The notes beneath the pieces were generated by a model. The model did no database searches, was not told where the DNA came from, and was given only the letters and a program-made list of their open reading frames with translations. Shown piece after piece: positions 5,054 through 16,131 of a stretch of 32,000 nt of DNA (within the stretch, counting starts at the first letter, position 1; the number at the start of each line of letters is the position of its first letter). Source of the stretch: Wallemia ichthyophaga EXF-994 (lineage: Eukaryota; Fungi; Basidiomycota); the NCBI RefSeq assembly GCF_000400465.1, contig NW_008806296.1, forward strand, positions 30,001 through 62,000. The letters are read 5' to 3'. A program made the position numbers and the translations under genes.

Positions 5054-7239
5054 TCAATTAGTAATCACATGCAAAATAACCAACGCACTTATAGTGGGCC
5101 TAGTTATTGAGTAGCTCAACCAATTAACAGACAAAGCGAAGAGAAACATTGGGTTGTATGTTTCTCTTTTATTCACATTAAAATCAACTTCAAAGGGTAT
5201 ACCAGCCTTCCGGTTTACTACTAGTAGCGTATTTATTAGCAGAATAGCTGAGGCTGTAAAGTACATTCCGTGGTGGTGGCAAACGGACATACCGAAGGTG
5301 TTGTTGATACTGCACAAACGAGAGGCAACTTCAAGATGAAATGGGTGGTTAATAGAAGAACGCGATAACAATTTGAACGTACTAATGTAAATAGCGTTGG
5401 AAAGAGAATTATTGTTGCGCTGGTTGCAACACTGACTATATAATAAGCCTTGCCGTATAGTATATTGAAGAGACTGAAAATTCCAGTACGCGTAGTAGAG
5501 AAAGTGCTAAAGGCTAAGAAAAGTCCAGTTGCTGTTGCTTGTAGAATTGCGTAAGCAATCTCGGCTGGAAGGGATGAAACTGGATGTGATGTGAGTGCAA
5601 CGATGGTGGATATGGATAGTAGTGAAAAATTTGAAGACATTGCGATACATTTTCTGCAATATATTCTGGTAGCTTTGATATGATGGTCTCGCACTGCGGT
5701 GACTGTTACAAGGGAGAAGAGAGATGGCGTTATCAGGAGCAAAGCAGGGATGTAGCCAGTCATCTTTGCAATATAAGTTGATTTTTAGTCCCATATTTTG
5801 CACTAATTTTACAAAGATCCAGACTTACCGCATCTAACATGATGAAAGATGATGATAAAGTTGCACAGCACTGTGTTTTAACTTTGTAGAAACGAATTTC
5901 ATCCAAGAATGCGTTATGGCTAACAAGATTTTACAAAAGGTGATGGTTGAAACTATAAACGCAATTGGGCGCTTTGTCAATGAGTAAGTAAAATTTGCAG
6001 CACGTCTTGGATAAGAGAGAATTAAATACGTGGCTCAATTCCGACGGATTGATCGAAATGTTAAATGCTAAATGTCGATTAGGTTGTTAGACTGCTTTGC
6101 GTTCATACTGATGCTCTTGTTGAGTTAGAAATCTTCTTTAGAATCTGCTTGAGTAACCCAAACAGCTAAAGGTATATTGTTACCTTTAATGTTCCTAGGC
6201 GCTTTGATTGAATATTTACGATCGTTTTTGATAGTTCCTGTCTGTACTTTGGAGCTATCTTTGCGCATACTGACGCTCGTCGTGAAATCGTACTCAAACG
6301 GGTCCATGTTGCTGCTTGTAGGTGTACTTATATCATAAACACTCTTGCAGCCATCTGATTTGTATATATGTTGCGATGAATTCGCTGATTTTGCACGTGC
6401 CAGCGTTTGGGAACTATTTACGTTCCAGGGGAGGAAGACAGTGTCTTAGAAGTGTCAGAGTGGAAAAACCACCTCTTATACTACCAACCTTTGCTGCTTC
6501 TCCCTTTCATAGCCTCCTCTATGTCTGAAGCTTCGGTCGTTTGGTTTTGGACCTGTGACACTTCCCATTCCAAAGACATTGAGGCTTTGGTGAAGAGTAT
6601 GAGAATGTATATGAGCTGATAAGCTGTCAGGCTAATTGTATAATTACACAGCTAAGACCCAACACACCGCCTCAATACCCTGTATTATCATGCAGGTCTG
6701 ATCGTTGAAGACGTTCTTTGCAATGCGGAGGCAACCATTGACCGCAGGCACTATAGAAGCAATAAAAATTAGCGCAACTTCGACACGACGATAGTAGACG
6801 TGGAATTTAACCATCAGGCCGACTCCAATCAAAGCATATAGTGCTAGGTTGATCAGGGTGACACCGATAACTCTGTCCAGTGAGCGTAGTGGATTTTCAA
6901 ATCTTAAACATATTCTAAAAATCAATTCCATCTAAAGTGGAAACGGCTTTGTTAAATGATGGGCGCTAAAAGTGAGACCATCCTTACTATCAGATATGTG
7001 ACTACGACAGAGGCCATGAACCCCACATATATCGCCGTAAGTGTTCGCGCTGTACACTTACCGCTCGTAACTTTGCTGAGTGCAAAGAACCAAGCAGGGG
7101 AGGTGAGCATGAGGAGTGTTCCAATATAAAGTGCTCTTGCAAGAGACACTATGCTGCTTAATATCACACCAGCTGGCATTTTAGTTCTTGTGGAGTAACT
7201 GGTAATACAAGAGACGCGTGGAGTGAATGACAGGATCAC
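5054..7239 (-). other. Fragmented hydrophobic multi-TM ORFs; possibly two tandem lineage-specific paralogues or pseudogenes
   Basis: ORFs 6952-7239, 6644-6931, 6125-6307, 5236-5763 and 5054-5371 are all on the minus strand and mostly hydrophobic. PFExDF occurs twice. I could not build a clean splice model. Confidence 0.3.
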
Positions 7240-7534
7240 ACCGGGAGTAAAATTGTTAAAGGAAGCAAATTATTTGCGTAAACTGAGATGCGCGAGCTCA
7301 TCAAGCAGCTTGTAAATACAGAATTATTCAATGTGGCTATTCATTTTAATCCTATTGCGCTGCGACGACACTTATTTATTCATATCCTCACCCTCGAAAT
7401 CACGGTAGCAGGCCATATGAATGAGCAAACCACGAGCTGATGTGGCTTGTGAGAAAGTAGGTTTAAGCTTGGTGCGTATACAGGGTTGACTATGTTTTCT
7501 GTTGATTTTTTAATTAGTAAAAAAAGGCAAAAAT

Positions 7535-7640
7535 TGGAGCAGCCCGGAATTGAACCGGGATCGGAAAGAAACAGATAGTTGCTTTTCCTGAAAGACAGGA
7601 TTATGCAAGCCTTCAGTGATAACCATTACACTACTGCCCC
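7535..7640 (-). tRNA. tRNA-Ala(UGC) with 34-nt intron at 37/38 (copy 1)
   Basis: Reverse complement GGGGCAGTAGTGTAATGGTTATCACTGAAGGCTTGCA-[intron]-TCTTTCCGATCCCGGTTCAATTCCGGGCTGCTCCA. Full cloverleaf, G3:U70 Ala identity pair, followed by a T-run. Confidence 0.95.
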
Positions 7641-8414
7641 GCTGTTAAACACCTAATCAATCACTATTTTATTCAATGGATTTTAAAGTCACTTCTTTTA
7701 GATTGTTTTTGAGAAAAGCCTCAATAAATGTAATAAAGGAAGACTCAAGAAGCATTTTTACATTTTCACCTACCTTTTATCTTCGATATAACGGCTAAGC
7801 GATTGTGAGAAAGGTTTTGCATTCTGGTGCAAGATTTTTTCTAGTTCCAATCTCAATTACTAAAACAAAATAGACCTTGTTATCATCAAAAGACGATATC
7901 TTGTACATATTACGAAATTCACAGAGCAAAGGCCAAGAAATGCATATACAGTCTAGAAACTGAATTTCTCAGTTTTTAATATAGCTGATGCCTTTTCAGG
8001 CTCAAAATAAGGACCGCTAATATTTAAAACCTCCTACACTATTCGATCAAGTTCAATGAATAACTTCAAGGTAGAGATGTCGAGACAATGATGCTTTATA
8101 GATATATTCATAACCAAAAAAATTGATTATGGCTTAGAAAATTAACCTTTGTTAGAATTTCAAGTAAGTCAGGCAAAGTTTGACTTTCATTGCTTGAAGA
8201 GTTGTCGTTCTTAAAATTTTCAAGCTATTAAAAATTTTAAGATCTGATCAGATACTGGGAATTACTAGTTAAAGAGCAAAACTTGCACTGATCTATCCCC
8301 AGAGTGACAAAGTTTAACAAGATCAACATATTGTTCAACATTAGAAAGTGGCGACTTCCACAAATAAATGCATTTTAGCTCATCATCTACTTTAATTCAC
8401 CTTCAAGAAGCAGT

Positions 8415-8550
8415 AAATCAAATGTATAATTAAAGCAATACAAGGTTTAACTAGGCCCATCTACATACACTTCTTATGTTACTATTCTGCAATCCTGTGA
8501 CTCCGCTTTGAAAGTGTAGCGTTTCTCGAATGTAGTCTTAAAGGCTTTGG
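8415..8550 (-). mobile_element. Diverged 3'-end relic of the LINE family (subfamily X)
   Basis: The reverse complement aligns by eye with 10570-10697: GAGAAACGCTACACTTTCAAA vs CAGAAACGCTATACTCTCAAA; AATAGTAACATAAGAAGT vs AATAGCAACATAAGAAGT; GTATTGCTTTAATTATA vs GTATCGCTTTAACTATA. Confidence 0.75.
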
Positions 8551-9087
8551 ATTGGGTGTGGTGCGGGCTCTAAGATTTGATCATTTTTGTGAGTGGACCA
8601 TGGTCATGTCTTGGAATGGCTTGTTGAGTTTTTTTAATCAATTTTGAGAAGGGATCCGCTTCGACGATTTTGTGGAGGCTTGAGCTGCCTAATTAACAGT
8701 CGATTTCATATGGTTCTGTGGTTTGTTCTTTGGGTACTGGGAGGAGTATCCTGCTGTTGCGACACTGCCATCAGCTACGGATCCGACCATATAATAAAAC
8801 CTTATGCTTTAGGTGTGTTCATGTTCTGTTGCTGTTGTTTTCTTCTATAGGTTTTTCTTTTGTTTTGTGTTTTGTCTGCTCATGGTGAGTCTGATATTTG
8901 TTTGTGGTACATGTTGTCGTGGGTATGGTAAGTGGTCAATCTGTTCTATATTGGATATGTCTACTATTTGGAGTGAGCGCTGGATAGGCTACGATATATC
9001 TGTAAGTGAAGATGAAGCAGGGGCTAAATGTACATTGGCTATCATATAGTAAACTGCCCATAATCGAAGTCGAGGTTGCAAAAGGGC

Positions 9088-9093
9088 AAAAAA
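9088..9093 (-). terminator. Pol III terminator (T6) of the permuted tRNA-Thr gene
   Basis: TAGC-TTTTTT-GCC lies immediately after nucleotide 37 of the downstream 5' half. Confidence 0.8.
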
Positions 9094-9097
9094 GCTA

Positions 9098-9174
9098 TAC
9101 GAGTCAGGCGCTCTAACCCCTGAGCTAAAAGCGCGATGTGCGCCTTCGCGGATTTGAACCGCGGACCTCCTGAT
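9098..9174 (-). tRNA. Circularly permuted tRNA-Thr(CGU): 3' half (nt 38-73) at 9174-9139, linker CATC at 9138-9135, 5' half (nt 1-37) at 9134-9098
   Basis: The minus strand reads ATCAGGAGGTCCGCGGTTCAAATCCGCGAAGGCGCA-CATC-GCGCTTTTAGCTCAGGGGTTAGAGCGCCTGACTCGTA. Swapping the halves gives a canonical 73-nt cloverleaf: acceptor GCGCTTT/AAGGCGC, D stem GCTC/GAGC, anticodon stem CCTGA/TCAGG, T stem CGCGG/CCGCG, loop CT-CGT-AA. Confidence 0.9.
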
Positions 9175-9390
9175 ATCGGAAGCTCATTGTTGCCGCCGAG
9201 ACAGATTCTTTTGGACTCTAACCAAATTTACGATAATTATTATTGTTATAATCAAGAGAAAATTGAGTCGACGCGGCGTCTATGGTGAGCTTTTTCAGCG
9301 TTATTGAGAACCACCAACAATTTAAAAATTACGACGCTAGTCAAGAAACGCTTCTAGTAAATTCAGCACCCCTTTTGACTCCTCATACTT

Positions 9391-9535
9391 TAAGAAGTAT
9401 TGATGGACGCACTTTATAACATGTATCGTCTTAACAATATAATCAGATTCCATCATCATCATTACAAGAAGTATAGATAGGCGAATATTATAAACATTGT
9501 AACGATTTTGACTATATTATGATTTCTATCTATCT
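9391..9535 (+). mobile_element. Two stacked LINE 3'-end stubs: ~9391-9462 with (CAT)n tail; ~9464-9535 with (CTAT)n tail
   Basis: The first stub resembles 10641-10710 (AAGAAGTATtGATgGaCG...ATGTATCG...CATCATCATCAT). The second has an exact AAGAAGTATAGATAGGCGAA...TTGTAACG.TTTTGACTAT match to the reverse complement of 13494-13560. Confidence 0.75.
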
Positions 9536-9747
9536 ATTGGTTATGTTTATTCTTTGGATAACTGGTGGATAGTGAATTGAGTTTGGCATATATGTCTGCG
9601 AAAGGGGTTCTGAAGCCACGTGGAAATTTCCTAAGGGCTGTAAAATGCATTTTGCTGAGTTATTTGATTGATTCAGATTTTAGGAGGTTGTTATTTTACG
9701 AGTAGCAATACCCCGCTGACCACTACCACCAACCACAACTACTCTCG

Positions 9748-11597
9748 ATGAAATCACTGTGGCAACTTGGTCGAGGCGCTTCACCCAGACACCCAATTCA
9801 ACTTTCACTGGATACCTGGCCACAAGGGAATTGAAGGCAACGAGAGAGCAGACCGCGCCGCGAACAAAGGCAGAGCAAACCACGGAAACGGTTTTGTTCT
9901 GGATATAGAACTCCGAACCTCCTGCTCTGTTACCCGGCGAAACCTCCACGAAACCCTCACTGCACCCATGCGCGTGGAGGGCAACACTCTCACGGGTCTC
10001 ACCTCAAGAACAGCAAGAACCGCCAAAGGCAATCTCAGCTCCATCAAGACCGCCAAGCTGTTGGAAAGTGTGCCCCGGGCCACTCGCTGTCTAGCAACAC
10101 AGCTCCGCTCTGGACACTTCCCTACCACTAAGTCCTATCGCTATCGCTTTAAGCTCACTGATTCTGCCAAGTGCAGCACCTGTCGATTAGACGACACTAT
10201 CCCACACCGTATCTTCATCTGCTCAAGACACATCATGGCGAGAATAGCTTTGAGAAGGAAGATTCTCGCTCTCGGTATTAGGTTCGAATTGGGACCTATG
10301 CTGAGAAACGCCAAATCTCTCCAAGCGCTATACGAATTCTTCAAGCCACAAATCTCCCATTCTCACCGACTTCTGTAGAGCACACAAACTGCAGAGGGTT
10401 TTACGCGGAGTGGTACTTTCGGGTGCCATTCAGGCTTTTCCCCCTTCAGGCCCACCCACCCTCTCATTTTTATTGATTTCGGTACACTAGTTCGACACAC
10501 CACAACAGCCTAACCAAAACTCGCACAATTCCGGGTTCTCGGTACAGCCATCGGTCGGATCGAGTAAATCTAAACCTTTACGCTCAGCACAGAAACGCTA
10601 TACTCTCAAATCAACGTCACACAAGTCCAAATAGCAACATAAGAAGTATAGATAGGCGCAGTTTTACTATGTATCGCTTTAACTATATATTATATTTCAT
10701 CATCATCATCAGCAACTTGGTCGGCAGCTTAAACTGGCCAGGCCGGTAAGGTCACTTAAAGGCCTTGTAAATCCATTCAAAGCAGCAGCAGCAGTGCGCA
10801 CTCAGGCGTTACCAAGAGCAGCTCACTCATCTACCAGATTGTCATCACGCACCATCCACAGAAACTCCTTCCACACACTGGGCCACTTATGCGTAACCAG
10901 ATCAGCCACCAGACCAGCATTTGGCAACTTCGCCAGCCGTACTCCTCAAGCAGGTCTAGGATGTGCAAGAACATACGCTACAGGCAGGGGAGCAGTAGAT
11001 GCAATCCAGAATATCAACGTGTTTGCCAGATGTACTCTCAACCTGCTCGGCGAGGACCATCTGGACAGTCTGCAAGCATCACAATTACGCCGTGAGCGGG
11101 AGGATGATCACCTCACGAACATGAAGAGCTACTTCGATGTCCCCGCCTGCAAGACTGTCCTCGTAGCTCCTCTTTCATCATCGCTCTCGCACCTCCTCAC
11201 CGAGACGAAGCCTTTGCATACCGACAGCGCAAGCGCTAATGGGGTGTTGTTCGATGACACTTTCGTCAGAGACCTCGTCAGCCTGAGGGTGTCGTCCAAC
11301 GTACACGCGAAGCGGCTCGATGCACTGTGTGCGAGTGTGCAGTCCGTCGCCGATACACTCGAGGTCACCAGCTCGGCCAGCGGCCTCCTCATCGTGAAGG
11401 CAACGTTCGATGGCACGGCTAAGGAGATCGGGAAGCTCATTCATGATAAATTGGACAGACTGGTTCTTGACGACATCGCCAACGCCCATCGATTTTCGGG
11501 CTGGTACAGGCTCTATCAGCTCGACGGAGATACTGTCCTCCATGACATGGTATCCAAGTCTTTCTACCTCCCAGACCCCGACCAGACCTTGAATTAG
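9748..11597 (+). pseudogene. Hypothetical 299-aa protein with Arg/Ser-rich, mitochondrial-presequence-like N-terminus, interrupted at codon 9 by a LINE
   Basis: Removing 9774-10723 (element plus one TSD) gives an uninterrupted 900-nt ORF from ATG9748 to stop 11597: MKSLWQLGRQLKLARPVRSLKGLVNPFKAAAAVRTQALP...PDQTLN. Confidence 0.85.
9774..10711 (+). mobile_element. 5'-truncated non-LTR retrotransposon (RNase H + CCHC, Tad1/I-like) with (CAT)4 tail and 12-bp TSD
   Basis: The ORF to 10378 has the RNase H C-terminus FHWIPGHKGIEGNERADRAA, then QLRSGH and C-x2-C-x7-H-x4-C. TSD GCAACTTGGTCG at 9762-9773 and 10712-10723. Confidence 0.93.
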
Positions 11598-13493: not shown

Positions 13494-14351
13494 TAGAAAT
13501 AATAATGTATAGTCAAAAGCGTTACAACGATTAATAATTTTCGCCTATCTATACTTCTTGTGCATTGAAAGCTGACGATTGTAGTGACTCAAAGGGATGC
13601 GGTTCTTGGCACGTGTGCCGTAAATTGGGAGGTAACTACGTGGAGCTACCGGAGCCACGCGGGTGGGTGCTGAGCTGGCTTTTGAAGAACTCGTAGAGAG
13701 CTTTAAGAGCTTTTTCATTTGAAAGCATATTTTCATCTCGAACCTTAACCCCATTCATATATCCTCCTCCTCAACGATAATCTTGCTTGATCGAAATTCC
13801 TACATCTGAAAATTCTGTGTGTGGTACTGTCTACTTCATTTCACTTGCTGCAAAGTGGTGAGTCGGACAGTTTGAATCGGAATCGGTAAGACTTGGCAGT
13901 AGGGAAGTGGCCTGAGCGGATTTGTGTGGAAGTCATCCTACCCATTGCTCTCTCTGCATCTTTCGACTTTGGTTCTGGTAAACTACGTACATCTTTAGGA
14001 ATATTTGTCGATGCTGAGGGAGAGGCTCCATGACACCATAATTGAAGAAAGCTAATTTATTCACCGTACCGGCCTCGAACGCAATTTCCCGCGCACAGCG
14101 TGCTCTCCGCTCCCTTTGTGGCGCAGCGGGAGCCAACCCCGCCCAAAAGCCGCTCGCTTACACAAAGAAACCCAACCGCAGGTGCGGAAGTAGACCTTCT
14201 GCACACGCGCTTGCCGCTGCGCCGCAAAATAACCGCTTGGAAGAATCTCTTCTTTGTCAGTATCATACTAATAGCCGGGACCTCCTTAGCAAGCGGTATA
14301 AGGATGTGCCCCTACCTTCCTAGGTAATACAGCGGGCAAGATGCAGGAACA
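13494..14351 (-). mobile_element. Decayed LINE copy (subfamily Y); candidate 9-bp TSD
   Basis: The minus strand encodes TQIRSGHFPTAKSYRFRFKLSDSPLC..*..HRIFRC..ALYEFFK, homologous to the 9774 element but with stops and frameshifts. It carries the 3' motif AAGAAGTATAGATAGGCG. GGTAACATG is repeated at 13485-13493 and 14352-14360. Clear homology extends only to ~13950. Confidence 0.8.
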
Positions 14352-14577: not shown

Positions 14578-14665
14578 GGCAGGATGGCCGAGTGGTCTAA
14601 GGCGCACGGTTAAGGCGAAAGCATCCGTGTTCGAAAGAGCGAGGGTTCGAATCCCTCTCCTGTCA
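14578..14665 (+). tRNA. tRNA-Leu(AAG) with 8-nt intron (14616-14623) and short variable arm
   Basis: GGCAGGATGGCCGAGTGGTCTAAGGCG-CACGG-TTAAGG-[CGAAAGCA]-T-CCGTG-TTCGAAAGAGC-GAGGGTTCGAATCCCTC-TCCTGTC-A, followed by T-runs. Confidence 0.92.
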
Positions 14666-15294
14666 AAGTTTTGCTTTTTTTGATACCAGCTCCAACTGTG
14701 ACTTGAAGCGGCCGTCTAATGTTGGATTGCTCAAAGAAGGCAGCTCCTTTTTTTCACAGCAGCTTCAGCATTCATGAGTGTTCGAAGATGCTGATTCTAT
14801 GTTGCTCCGGTTGCAGTCAAGTATTACACACTAAGACGTATAAAGATACTTCTGTAACTTTCAGGCTCTCACTAGTTCATTTTTGTTTAATATGGCTCCC
14901 GTAATTACCACAACTCTGCACTAAACACATCTCGCAGATGCGCCCATTTGACTGTTATATGCATAAAAGTACAAATGTGATATCAAATGAGTGCAGTGGT
15001 CGATCGATTCGACAGAACGCCCGCGCAAGATAGCACAAAAGCTTGGATCATTGAGAGGGGCCTGCAGCCTGGAGCGTGACGTTATTTTAACCCACCCAAA
15101 CAAAGAGACCGTCGATTTCGAGACCCTCGCAACAGACTAGTTTTTTCTCGTCGATCTAGTGTGTTGTCAGCATTGCAGGTTGCGCGAAAAAAAAGGAAAC
15201 CGTAAATGGCATACCCGACAAGTGCGGAACAAGGTCATATTTTAGCCTTAAAACGTAGAGACAAAGATCTGTTAACTCTTTTTATCTCAGTCAG

Positions 15295-15662: not shown

Positions 15663-15768
15663 GGGGCAGTAGTGTAATGGTTATCACTGAAGGCTTGCAT
15701 AGTCCTGTCTTTCAGGCAAAGCAACTATCTGTTTCTTTCCGATCCCGGTTCAATTCCGGGCTGCTCCA
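15663..15768 (+). tRNA. tRNA-Ala(UGC) with 34-nt intron (15700-15733) (copy 2)
   Basis: Exons are identical to the 7535-7640 copy; the intron differs at 2 positions. G3:U70 pair present; followed by ATTTTTGCC. Confidence 0.95.
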
Positions 15769-16131
15769 ATTTTTGCCATTTGTTTGTCTGGATCATTCTA
15801 GTCAGCGACAAAACAGCGACAAAACGTATGTGACAAAATTTAGACTTTCTTATAATTTGAGACTAATGCGGTGACTGATGGTAGGATTTGTGTTACTTGT
15901 CGGCGTTTTCCCCGTCGTGGCTCGAAGATTCAGCAACGCTGAGCAACACCTCCTTTTATGGTGACGAATGATATAGATAAATGAGATGGAGTTGTCCCGC
16001 ATACATCAAAAGGACCATTCTATTGTAACTGAAATATACAATGACACATACACGATATGATGTGAAACAAAGTAAATACGGCAAATGACAAAACAAAAAG
16101 CAAATGAAAAAAGAGGAAATAGAAATAACAA

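Follow-up and report, generated by a model that had tools for sequence, protein, structure and literature searches.

A 77-nt unit in the nuclear genome of the salt-loving basidiomycete Wallemia ichthyophaga (9174 to 9098, minus strand) carries the two halves of a tRNA-Thr(CGU) in swapped order, with both of its ends lying exactly at the 37/38 position of the anticodon loop. Coordinates refer to the window, the whole 32,000-nt stretch of contig NW_008806296.1 (strain EXF-994) that was analysed. The permuted architecture is real and fixed in the species and, going by the literature that is open to searching, such a layout is new for fungi. We read the locus as a genuine, working circularly permuted tRNA-Thr(CGU) gene of the 37/38 anticodon-loop type, a reading drawn from the sequence to which we assign a probability of roughly 55%. 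It is an evenly balanced proposition that this would be the first functional permuted tRNA gene in Fungi and in opisthokonts, that it could be the sole source of tRNA-Thr(CGU) and that it would have arisen recently within the genus.

Architecture and detection of the permuted unit

The unit begins with the 3′ half of the tRNA (positions 38–73; 9174-9139, minus strand; ATCAGGAGGTCCGCGGTTCAAATCCGCGAAGGCGCA, 36 nt), which contributes the 3′ sides of the anticodon and acceptor stems and, between them, the variable loop AGGTC and the T arm, where the B box GGTTCAAATCC is located; it ends in the discriminator A73. An intervening sequence of 4 nt, CATC (9138-9135, minus strand), links A73 to G1 of the 5′ half (positions 1–37; 9134-9098, minus strand; GCGCTTTTAGCTCAGGGGTTAGAGCGCCTGACTCGTA, 37 nt). 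The latter contributes the 5′ sides of the acceptor and anticodon stems, with the D arm and its A box TAGCTCAGGGG between them, and the anticodon-loop residues C32, U33, C34, G35, U36 and A37. It is followed by a trailer TAGC (9097-9094, minus strand), a TTTTTT run (9093-9088) and then GCCC and TTTT, to 9080. The minus strand from 9174 to 9088 thus shows the half order, CATC linker and TAGC-T6 tail described in the original prediction, and the break that it placed at the canonical intron site 37/38 is exact on both sides.

When the halves are joined in the order 5′ plus 3′, ARAGORN identifies a 73-nt tRNA-Thr(cgt). All its stems are paired (acceptor 7 bp, with one U5:G68; D 4 bp; anticodon 5 bp; T 5 bp), and U8, A14, G18G19, U33, G53-T54-T55-C56, A58 and C61 are kept. 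The set of Thr identity residues is complete, including A73, G1-C72 and C2-G71. The 73-nt cloverleaf with a single G:U pair and intact invariant and Thr residues, already described in the original prediction, is therefore also what the program returns. The fold of the re-ordered RNA is better than that of all but one of 200 shuffled sequences (z = −2.76). Under the definition by which circularly permuted tRNA genes are recognised (Soma 2007; Maruyama 2010), the locus has the structural features of the 37/38 type: half order, linker length, cloverleaf, T-stretch and a linker free of terminators. The intervening sequences of known permuted tRNA genes span 1–74 nt (PMC3978253); the 4-nt CATC falls inside this span and has no T-run. 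The marks of a pseudogene are absent, as there is no defect in any stem or invariant residue, the outer halves are undetectable and T6 lies 4 nt past A37.

In its native order the locus yields no tRNA call by ARAGORN and no Rfam match at the gathering threshold, which bears out the expectation that standard scanners would miss it. A scan for permuted tRNAs was carried out by doubling 130-nt segments in tandem before submitting them to ARAGORN. It recovered the locus in 4–5 overlapping segments and found no second permuted tRNA in the window and the loci L006–L015, which were retrieved for comparison. The same scan gave 0 matches in 352 kb of shuffled or reversed sequence and the permuted tRNA is thus not a chance pattern. 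No further copy of either half was found in ~190 kb of Wallemia DNA (the genome has 9.6 Mb).

The only Rfam family that matches the native order is YrlA (RF02553). The match, which covers 9080-9196 on the minus strand, has 25.7 bits (E 0.049); it falls short of the gathering score of 69, and the locus is not assigned to the family. The tRNA-like module of YrlA has the same permuted order as the Wallemia locus, and we count the match as an independent check of topology. It also brings in the reading that the locus does have a use, but one other than making a tRNA, serving as a Y-RNA-like permuted RNA, as the source of an A-box-driven 5′ tRNA half or as a TFIIIC chromatin boundary. This we consider improbable. 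The best Rfam match being to a bacterial Y-RNA-like family speaks for it, but the score is far under the gathering score and is explained by the tRNA parts alone. A leader GGCAA and the GCC found beyond T6 could lengthen a YrlA-like closing stem, although T6 would stop the transcript before this extended stem. In yeast, an intact B box by itself can bind TFIIIC, which also speaks for this reading; yet the intact anticodon loop and the Thr identity elements are needed neither by a scaffold RNA nor by a boundary. No further copies or relatives that would support an RNA family were found in the loci L006–L015 and ~190 kb of Wallemia DNA.

The assignment of the DNA to a fungal nuclear genome, already made in the original prediction, is now specified to W. 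ichthyophaga (Wallemiomycetes) by the neighbouring ORF 10794-11597, which is 100% identical to a protein of this species; the other genes of the window are eukaryotic (Atg22, CTU2, RasGEF, GH32). The 77-nt unit is unchanged in four other NCBI assemblies from different strains (GCA_004918895.1, GCA_004917865.1, GCA_004918415.1 and GCA_004917895.1), in which its flanks are 98.7–99.3% identical; contigs are indexed for 8 samples in all. The 3′ half is identical in loci L006–L009. Mis-assembly, the first objection that could be raised against the locus, is excluded because these four assemblies carry the unchanged unit, and an artefact of assembly or sequencing can be dismissed with near certainty. 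An alignment of the five strain sequences has 1774 sites, of which 23 are variable (~1.3%), none of them within 9098-9174; this absence of SNPs from 77 nt is not significant because only ~1 would be expected. SNPs are found in the flanks at 9097 (trailer +1), 9096 (trailer +2) and 9186 (leader −12). The change of A+2 to G still allows pairing with U−7, as G:U (see below). This pattern fits a constraint that ends exactly at the borders of the tRNA, but has no statistical weight.

Neighbourhood and origin of the locus

The window also has conventional, intron-bearing tRNA genes: a tRNA-Ala(UGC) in two inverted copies (7535-7640 and 15663-15768) and a class-II tRNA (14578-14665). Their introns, of 8 and 34 nt, can be placed at 37/38, though ARAGORN gives shifted positions. 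Orthologues of a neighbouring 300-aa gene are present in W. hederae (61% identity) and W. mellicola (49%). The inverted tRNA-Ala(UGC) pair is found in W. mellicola as well (L012), between ATG22 and the orthologue of the 300-aa gene. The DNA between these tRNA-Ala genes is different, shows no trace of either Thr half and has no orthologue of the 301-aa gene (P0001) that neighbours the permuted unit in W. ichthyophaga. The “half tRNA-Ala” copies seen in L012 adjoin runs of N and were discarded as scaffolding artefacts. W. hederae (L011) has an epimerase as the upstream neighbour and no tRNA at that place. In a third relative (L010) the 301-aa gene has an orthologue flanked by Med12 on one side and, on the other, by the start of a tRNA that matches 14578-14665; no Thr unit is present. 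In these syntenic comparisons the unit is found at this site in W. ichthyophaga alone, where it sits on a synteny breakpoint. The original prediction would have fallen if relatives carried two intact tandem tRNA-Thr genes of which the locus were a deletion remnant; no Thr gene at all is found at the syntenic place in L010–L012. Since it is absent from the syntenic regions of its congeners the unit may be young, and its intactness may possibly reflect age and not selection.

This leads to an alternative that we consider doubtful but serious, namely that the locus is an inert rearrangement product. The starting point would be a conventional tRNA-Thr(CGU) gene with an intron, duplicated in tandem or copied via RNA or a circle, the outer parts being lost as this LINE-rich region was reshuffled. 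The result would be a permuted pseudogene that is not transcribed or not processed, while the working tRNA-Thr(CGU) is encoded elsewhere (our doubt applies to this scenario as a whole). The synteny breakpoint and the lack of the unit at the syntenic site in W. mellicola, W. hederae and L010 are favourable to such an origin. Furthermore, breakpoints inside an ancestral intron of 30–35 nt would yield the “exact” 37/38 ends without selection. Against this scenario, the 73 nt are without defect, whereas any outer halves are gone beyond detection. The latter were searched for in 126 nt upstream and 148 nt downstream by local alignment under three scoring schemes, with shuffled and genomic nulls. 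No significant remnant of an outer 5′ half upstream or of a 3′ half downstream was found (p at least 0.04 uncorrected, mostly >0.1), in agreement with the initial observation that both flanks lack them. The best upstream resemblance to the 5′ half is GGTTAGAG at −49 (p 0.04 uncorrected, 0.1–0.25 otherwise) and another one, weak and non-significant, is AGCTCA..GACTC at −117..−90. Both might be counted in favour of an inert product. A tandem remnant with decayed outer halves was rejected, nothing in the alignments of the flanks being significant.

The surroundings are also rich in remains of mobile elements. LINE 3′ fragments are found at 8415-8526 (minus strand), 9391-9455 (plus strand), 13496-13562 (minus strand) and 13884-13927 (minus strand), those nearest to the unit lying 217 nt upstream and 572 nt downstream, and a strain-specific LINE insertion (9774-10711) lies 600 nt from it. 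Such a setting would suit an inert rearrangement product, but the tRNA and the nearer LINE tail have opposite orientations, the unit is flanked by neither a poly(A) nor a (TCA)n tail, and no target-site duplication is significant. The candidate duplication, GCAAC..CTTCCGAT versus GCAAC..CTTCGAT, was not accepted (p 0.09–0.17). An origin mediated by LINEs was rejected on the grounds that the nearer tail is antisense to the tRNA and that no tail adjoins the unit. Likewise, the locus does not have the features of a SINE or LINE retrocopy: there is no copy in ~190 kb (a small sample, in which rare copies could be missed), no tail and no significant repeat.

Flanking signals and a possible maturation route

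The region upstream from the 3′ half (9187-9254, minus strand) is a putative control region with a predicted promoter role. It has an AT-rich stretch, TGATTATAACAATAATAATTATCGTAAATTT, at ~−80 to −49, which includes TATAAC at −76. This is the nearest TATA-like motif; at ~−30 relative to a plausible start no clear TATA is seen. The definition of permuted genes used above includes a TATA-like or AT-rich element within ~50 bp of the 3′ half. The sequence CAACAA is present at −18..−13 and we take it, after yeast tRNA genes, to be a possible start-site motif. The two internal boxes are reversed in the permuted unit, B ahead of A, and yeast-type TFIIIC is not known to work with this order. This reversal is unfavourable for TFIIIC and supports the inert product discussed above.

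The downstream flank (9080-9097, minus strand) is made of the trailer and a bipartite putative Pol III terminator, TTTTTT-GCCC-TTTT. T6 begins 4 nt past A37, and only 1.4% of the intergenic positions of the window have a T6 that begins 10 nt away or less. The conventional tRNA genes nearby end in T4-5 and GC(C), followed in two of three by T7, an arrangement that resembles the terminator of the permuted unit.

The leader segment directly 5′ of position 38 (9176-9185, minus strand) was analysed in constrained folds. With the cloverleaf stems enforced, leader GAGCU (−11..−7; 9185-9181) pairs with trailer AGCUU (+2..+6), and leader CGA (−4..−2; 9178-9176) pairs with U33 C34 G35. In this enforced fold the cut after A37 would fall in a U36-A37-U+1 loop and the cut before A38 in a U−1/A38 bulge. 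The junction is thus ordered as a 5-bp helix, a 3/2-nt internal loop (5′ cut), a 3-bp helix, a 2/1-nt bulge (3′ cut) and the anticodon stem. The energy gained from the pairing of leader and trailer is −6.9 kcal/mol, compared with ~−3 for shuffled or genomic flanks (p ~0.04–0.06). Alternatively, G−3 (9177) can pair with C32 and form the classical anticodon-intron (A-I) pair; the neighbouring introns, when placed at 37/38, likewise carry a G at −3. A local-type terminator only 4 nt past A37 together with a complementary leader and trailer has a joint chance of ~1e-3, a point against an inert product, although the statistics on the flanks, both terminator spacing and leader/trailer pairing, are post hoc.

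The junction resembles a bulge-helix-bulge (BHB) without having its strict 3-4-3 form. The eukaryotic splicing endonuclease acts by a ruler mechanism in which varied local structure is tolerated (PMC4090602), and a non-strict BHB may be acceptable because the enzyme measures from the tRNA body. Unconstrained folding favours a different pairing of the leader, CUUCC:GGAGG, by 1–3 kcal/mol, and the unconstrained minimum free energy structure of the precursor has no cloverleaf with leaders of at least 8 nt. In our view this carries no weight against function: the re-ordered tRNA, folded by itself, lacks the D and anticodon stems too.

If the locus is a working gene, its expression could proceed as follows, every step being one that we infer from the anatomy of the unit and from known enzymes. 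RNA polymerase III would start ~15–45 nt upstream of position 38 and stop in the T6 past A37, to give a transcript composed of the leader, the 3′ half, CAUC, the 5′ half and UAGC-U(n). This RNA would fold as a normal tRNA body whose acceptor stem is capped by a CAUC loop, while the pairing of the leader with the trailer (5 bp) and with U33-G35 (3 bp) would imitate an intron that is open at its far end. The SEN endonuclease, measuring from the tRNA body, would cut after A37 and before A38, and Trl1 with Tpt1 would ligate A37 to A38; fungi possess the Trl1 ligase and not RtcB. RNase P and tRNase Z would excise CAUC, followed by addition of CCA. In yeast, end-processing usually precedes splicing. 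If the ends were processed first here, the intermediate may therefore be a nicked tRNA whose two pieces stay together through its stems, and not a circle. The product would decode ACG, which accounts for 15% of the Thr codons in the ORFs of the window, in line with other NCG codons.

Permuted tRNA genes are regarded as an oddity of a few algae, of nucleomorph descendants and of one archaeon, and have been discussed either as vestiges of an early stage of tRNA evolution or as linked to unusual machinery for transcription and splicing. A functional gene in Wallemia would imply that such a layout can evolve de novo in a lineage whose machinery is that of ordinary eukaryotes, and that standard SEN/Trl1 splicing and yeast-type Pol III can express swapped halves with reversed A and B boxes. 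The logic of Pol III promoters would then be more flexible than the rule of an A box followed by a B box, and real fungal tRNA genes could escape the counts of standard scanners. It would also offer a comparison within one genus, between W. ichthyophaga with the gene at the locus and W. mellicola and W. hederae without it, for the study of gene birth. Were the locus inert, it would still be a rare snapshot of an intact permuted intermediate.

Relation to known permuted tRNA genes and RNAs

The hosts of permuted tRNA genes reported in the full-text literature searched are Cyanidioschyzon merolae, prasinophytes, chlorarachniophyte nucleomorphs, Auxenochlorella and Thermofilum pendens. No fungal case was found in the literature searched, and a 2026 review lists only algae and archaea; the statement of the original prediction that no fungal example was known agrees with a record limited to algae, nucleomorphs and one archaeon. 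An exact 30-mer of the 5′ half has 0 matches in metagenome contigs. Of five ORFs of the window compared with protein records by exact sequence, four had no entry. A looser pattern (Thr(CGU) 5′ half, then T5 within 10 nt) has 115 matches. Among the 80 of these 115 that are listed there are 21 conventional genes with short introns, several with introns of ~219 nt, many 5′ halves without a 3′ half detected within ~220 nt, and one permuted gene. This gene, a tRNA-Thr(CGU) on contig L093 (minus strand, 820-725), has the order 3′ half, 16-nt linker, 5′ half, 10-nt trailer and T5. It is green-algal, since an NRPS fragment of the contig is 100% identical to a Picochlorum protein, an identity by which a fungal origin was rejected. 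Its architecture is that of the Wallemia locus, and it can be used as a positive control from a lineage in which permuted tRNA genes are expected.

The closest counterparts are the 37/38 “type II” genes of green algae and of the Bigelowiella natans nucleomorph (Maruyama et al. 2010), which have the same order and junction as the Wallemia unit and share with it a T-run after a short trailer, a terminator-free linker and an AT-rich upstream region. Permuted genes with a 37/38 junction are now also reported in Auxenochlorella (2025 preprint, PMC12633428). The Wallemia unit differs from the type II algal genes in its fungal host, its 4-nt linker, its occurrence as the single gene seen and its absence from the syntenic site of its congeners. 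Because fungi lack RtcB, its ligation would in addition need Trl1/Tpt1, unlike that of the algal genes.

The permuted genes of C. merolae follow the same logic, with a TATA-like element upstream and a T-stretch downstream, and their maturation corresponds to the route proposed for Wallemia: cleavage by the endonuclease at the leader/trailer junction, a circle, and then RNase P and tRNase Z. They differ in being many, in having several junction positions and in their clear BHB motifs, whereas the Wallemia junction is only BHB-like. No homologues of TFC1 and TFC3, the box-binding subunits of TFIIIC, were identified in C. merolae, while a standard TFIIIC is expected in Wallemia. The archaeon T. 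pendens (Chan et al. 2011) shares the permuted order and a very short linker, of 1 nt compared with 4 nt in Wallemia. Its junction lies at 59/60 in the T loop, recognition is by a strict BHB, and the promoter and enzymes are archaeal.

YrlA is like the Wallemia locus in its succession of T arm, acceptor-like stem-loop and D arm, a structure that its 5′ and 3′ termini close. The family is bacterial and has neither an anticodon loop nor an aminoacylation identity set, the likeness being one of topology and not of membership. The conventional intron-bearing tRNA genes of Wallemia itself share with the permuted unit an intron position placeable at 37/38, a G at −3 relative to the 3′ cut and the T-run/GC(C)/T-run terminator. 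Their halves are in the normal order and their introns are closed, whereas the “intron” of the permuted gene would be an open pair of leader and trailer.

Pol III-type genes and their terminators

The gene at 14578-14665 (+) was labelled by ARAGORN as a tRNA-Val(AAC) with an intron at position 36/37. This assignment was set aside given its class-II D arm, its long variable arm and the possibility of placing its 8-nt intron (CGAAAGCA) canonically at 37/38. These same features identify it as a tRNA-Leu(AAG). The window also carries two inverted copies of a tRNA-Ala(UGC) gene with a 34-nt intron, found at 7535-7640 (-) and 15663-15768 (+), which flank the region on both sides and are 96.7% identical across 122 nt. 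Only one of them was listed by Rfam at the gathering threshold while both were recovered when Rfam was run by E-value.

Terminator regions were compared for these three genes (14666-14705 (+), 7495-7534 (-) and 15769-15808 (+), respectively) and for the permuted tRNA-Thr(CGU) unit at 9098-9174 (-), whose terminator lies at 9080-9097 (-). All four are similar, with GC(C) coming after a stretch of T4-6. The sequence TTTTTGCC is common to the permuted unit and to the two tRNA-Ala copies; the class-II tRNA gene has TTTTGCT. A second T-run (T4-T7) is found downstream of every gene except the tRNA-Ala at 15663-15768.

LINE sequences between the tRNA genes

A 5′-truncated non-LTR (LINE) element of 938 bp occupies positions 9774-10711 (+) and ends with a (TCA)n tail. 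It is carried by the window strain and is missing in the four other W. ichthyophaga assemblies compared (GCA_004918895.1, GCA_004917865.1, GCA_004918415.1 and GCA_004917895.1). The element is flanked by a 12-bp target-site duplication (GCAACTTGGTCG; copies at 9762-9773 and 10712-10723). It is a clean, recent insertion. Two motifs of the element lie in ORF 9767-10378: one of RNase H and one of Cys/His type, the latter interpreted as a zinc knuckle. Fragments of the 3′-end of the same LINE accumulate in the tRNA-rich intergenic DNA of the window (8415-8526 (-), 9391-9455 (+), 13496-13562 (-) and 13884-13927 (-)). Repeats were reported to represent only 1.67% of the W. ichthyophaga genome. LINE ORF fragments are also present in the corresponding inter-tRNA region of a W. 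mellicola locus (L012, ~6070-8960), and this LINE may have a preference for the neighbourhood of Pol III genes.

The W. mellicola locus has the same inverted tRNA-Ala(UGC) pair (5767-5873 and 9581-9687; intron of 35 nt), while the DNA enclosed by the pair differs between the two species. The inverted pair may mediate rearrangements. Apparent tRNA-Ala half copies at 6160-6197 and 9229-9306 of L012 were rejected as natural fragments: both directly adjoin runs of N and are scaffolding artefacts of the reference.

tRNA-Thr(CGU) genes in metagenomes

Near-identical tRNA-Thr(CGU) genes were found in a group of mostly marine-labelled metagenome contigs. Their first reading as isolated 5′ halves was abandoned for the three members examined (L039, L042, L077), whose anticodon loop is interrupted by an intron of ~219 nt that may belong to group I. 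The same 5′ half occurs in contigs L027, L057, L071, L076, L078 and L079. Another metagenome contig (L093, Ga0114919_10231739) carries a permuted tRNA-Thr(CGU) gene on the minus strand (820-725). Its linker measures 16 nt and its trailer, which is followed by T5, 10 nt; the gene has one acceptor mismatch and a variable region longer by ~7 nt. An NRPS fragment encoded by this contig is 100% identical to a protein of the trebouxiophyte green alga Picochlorum.
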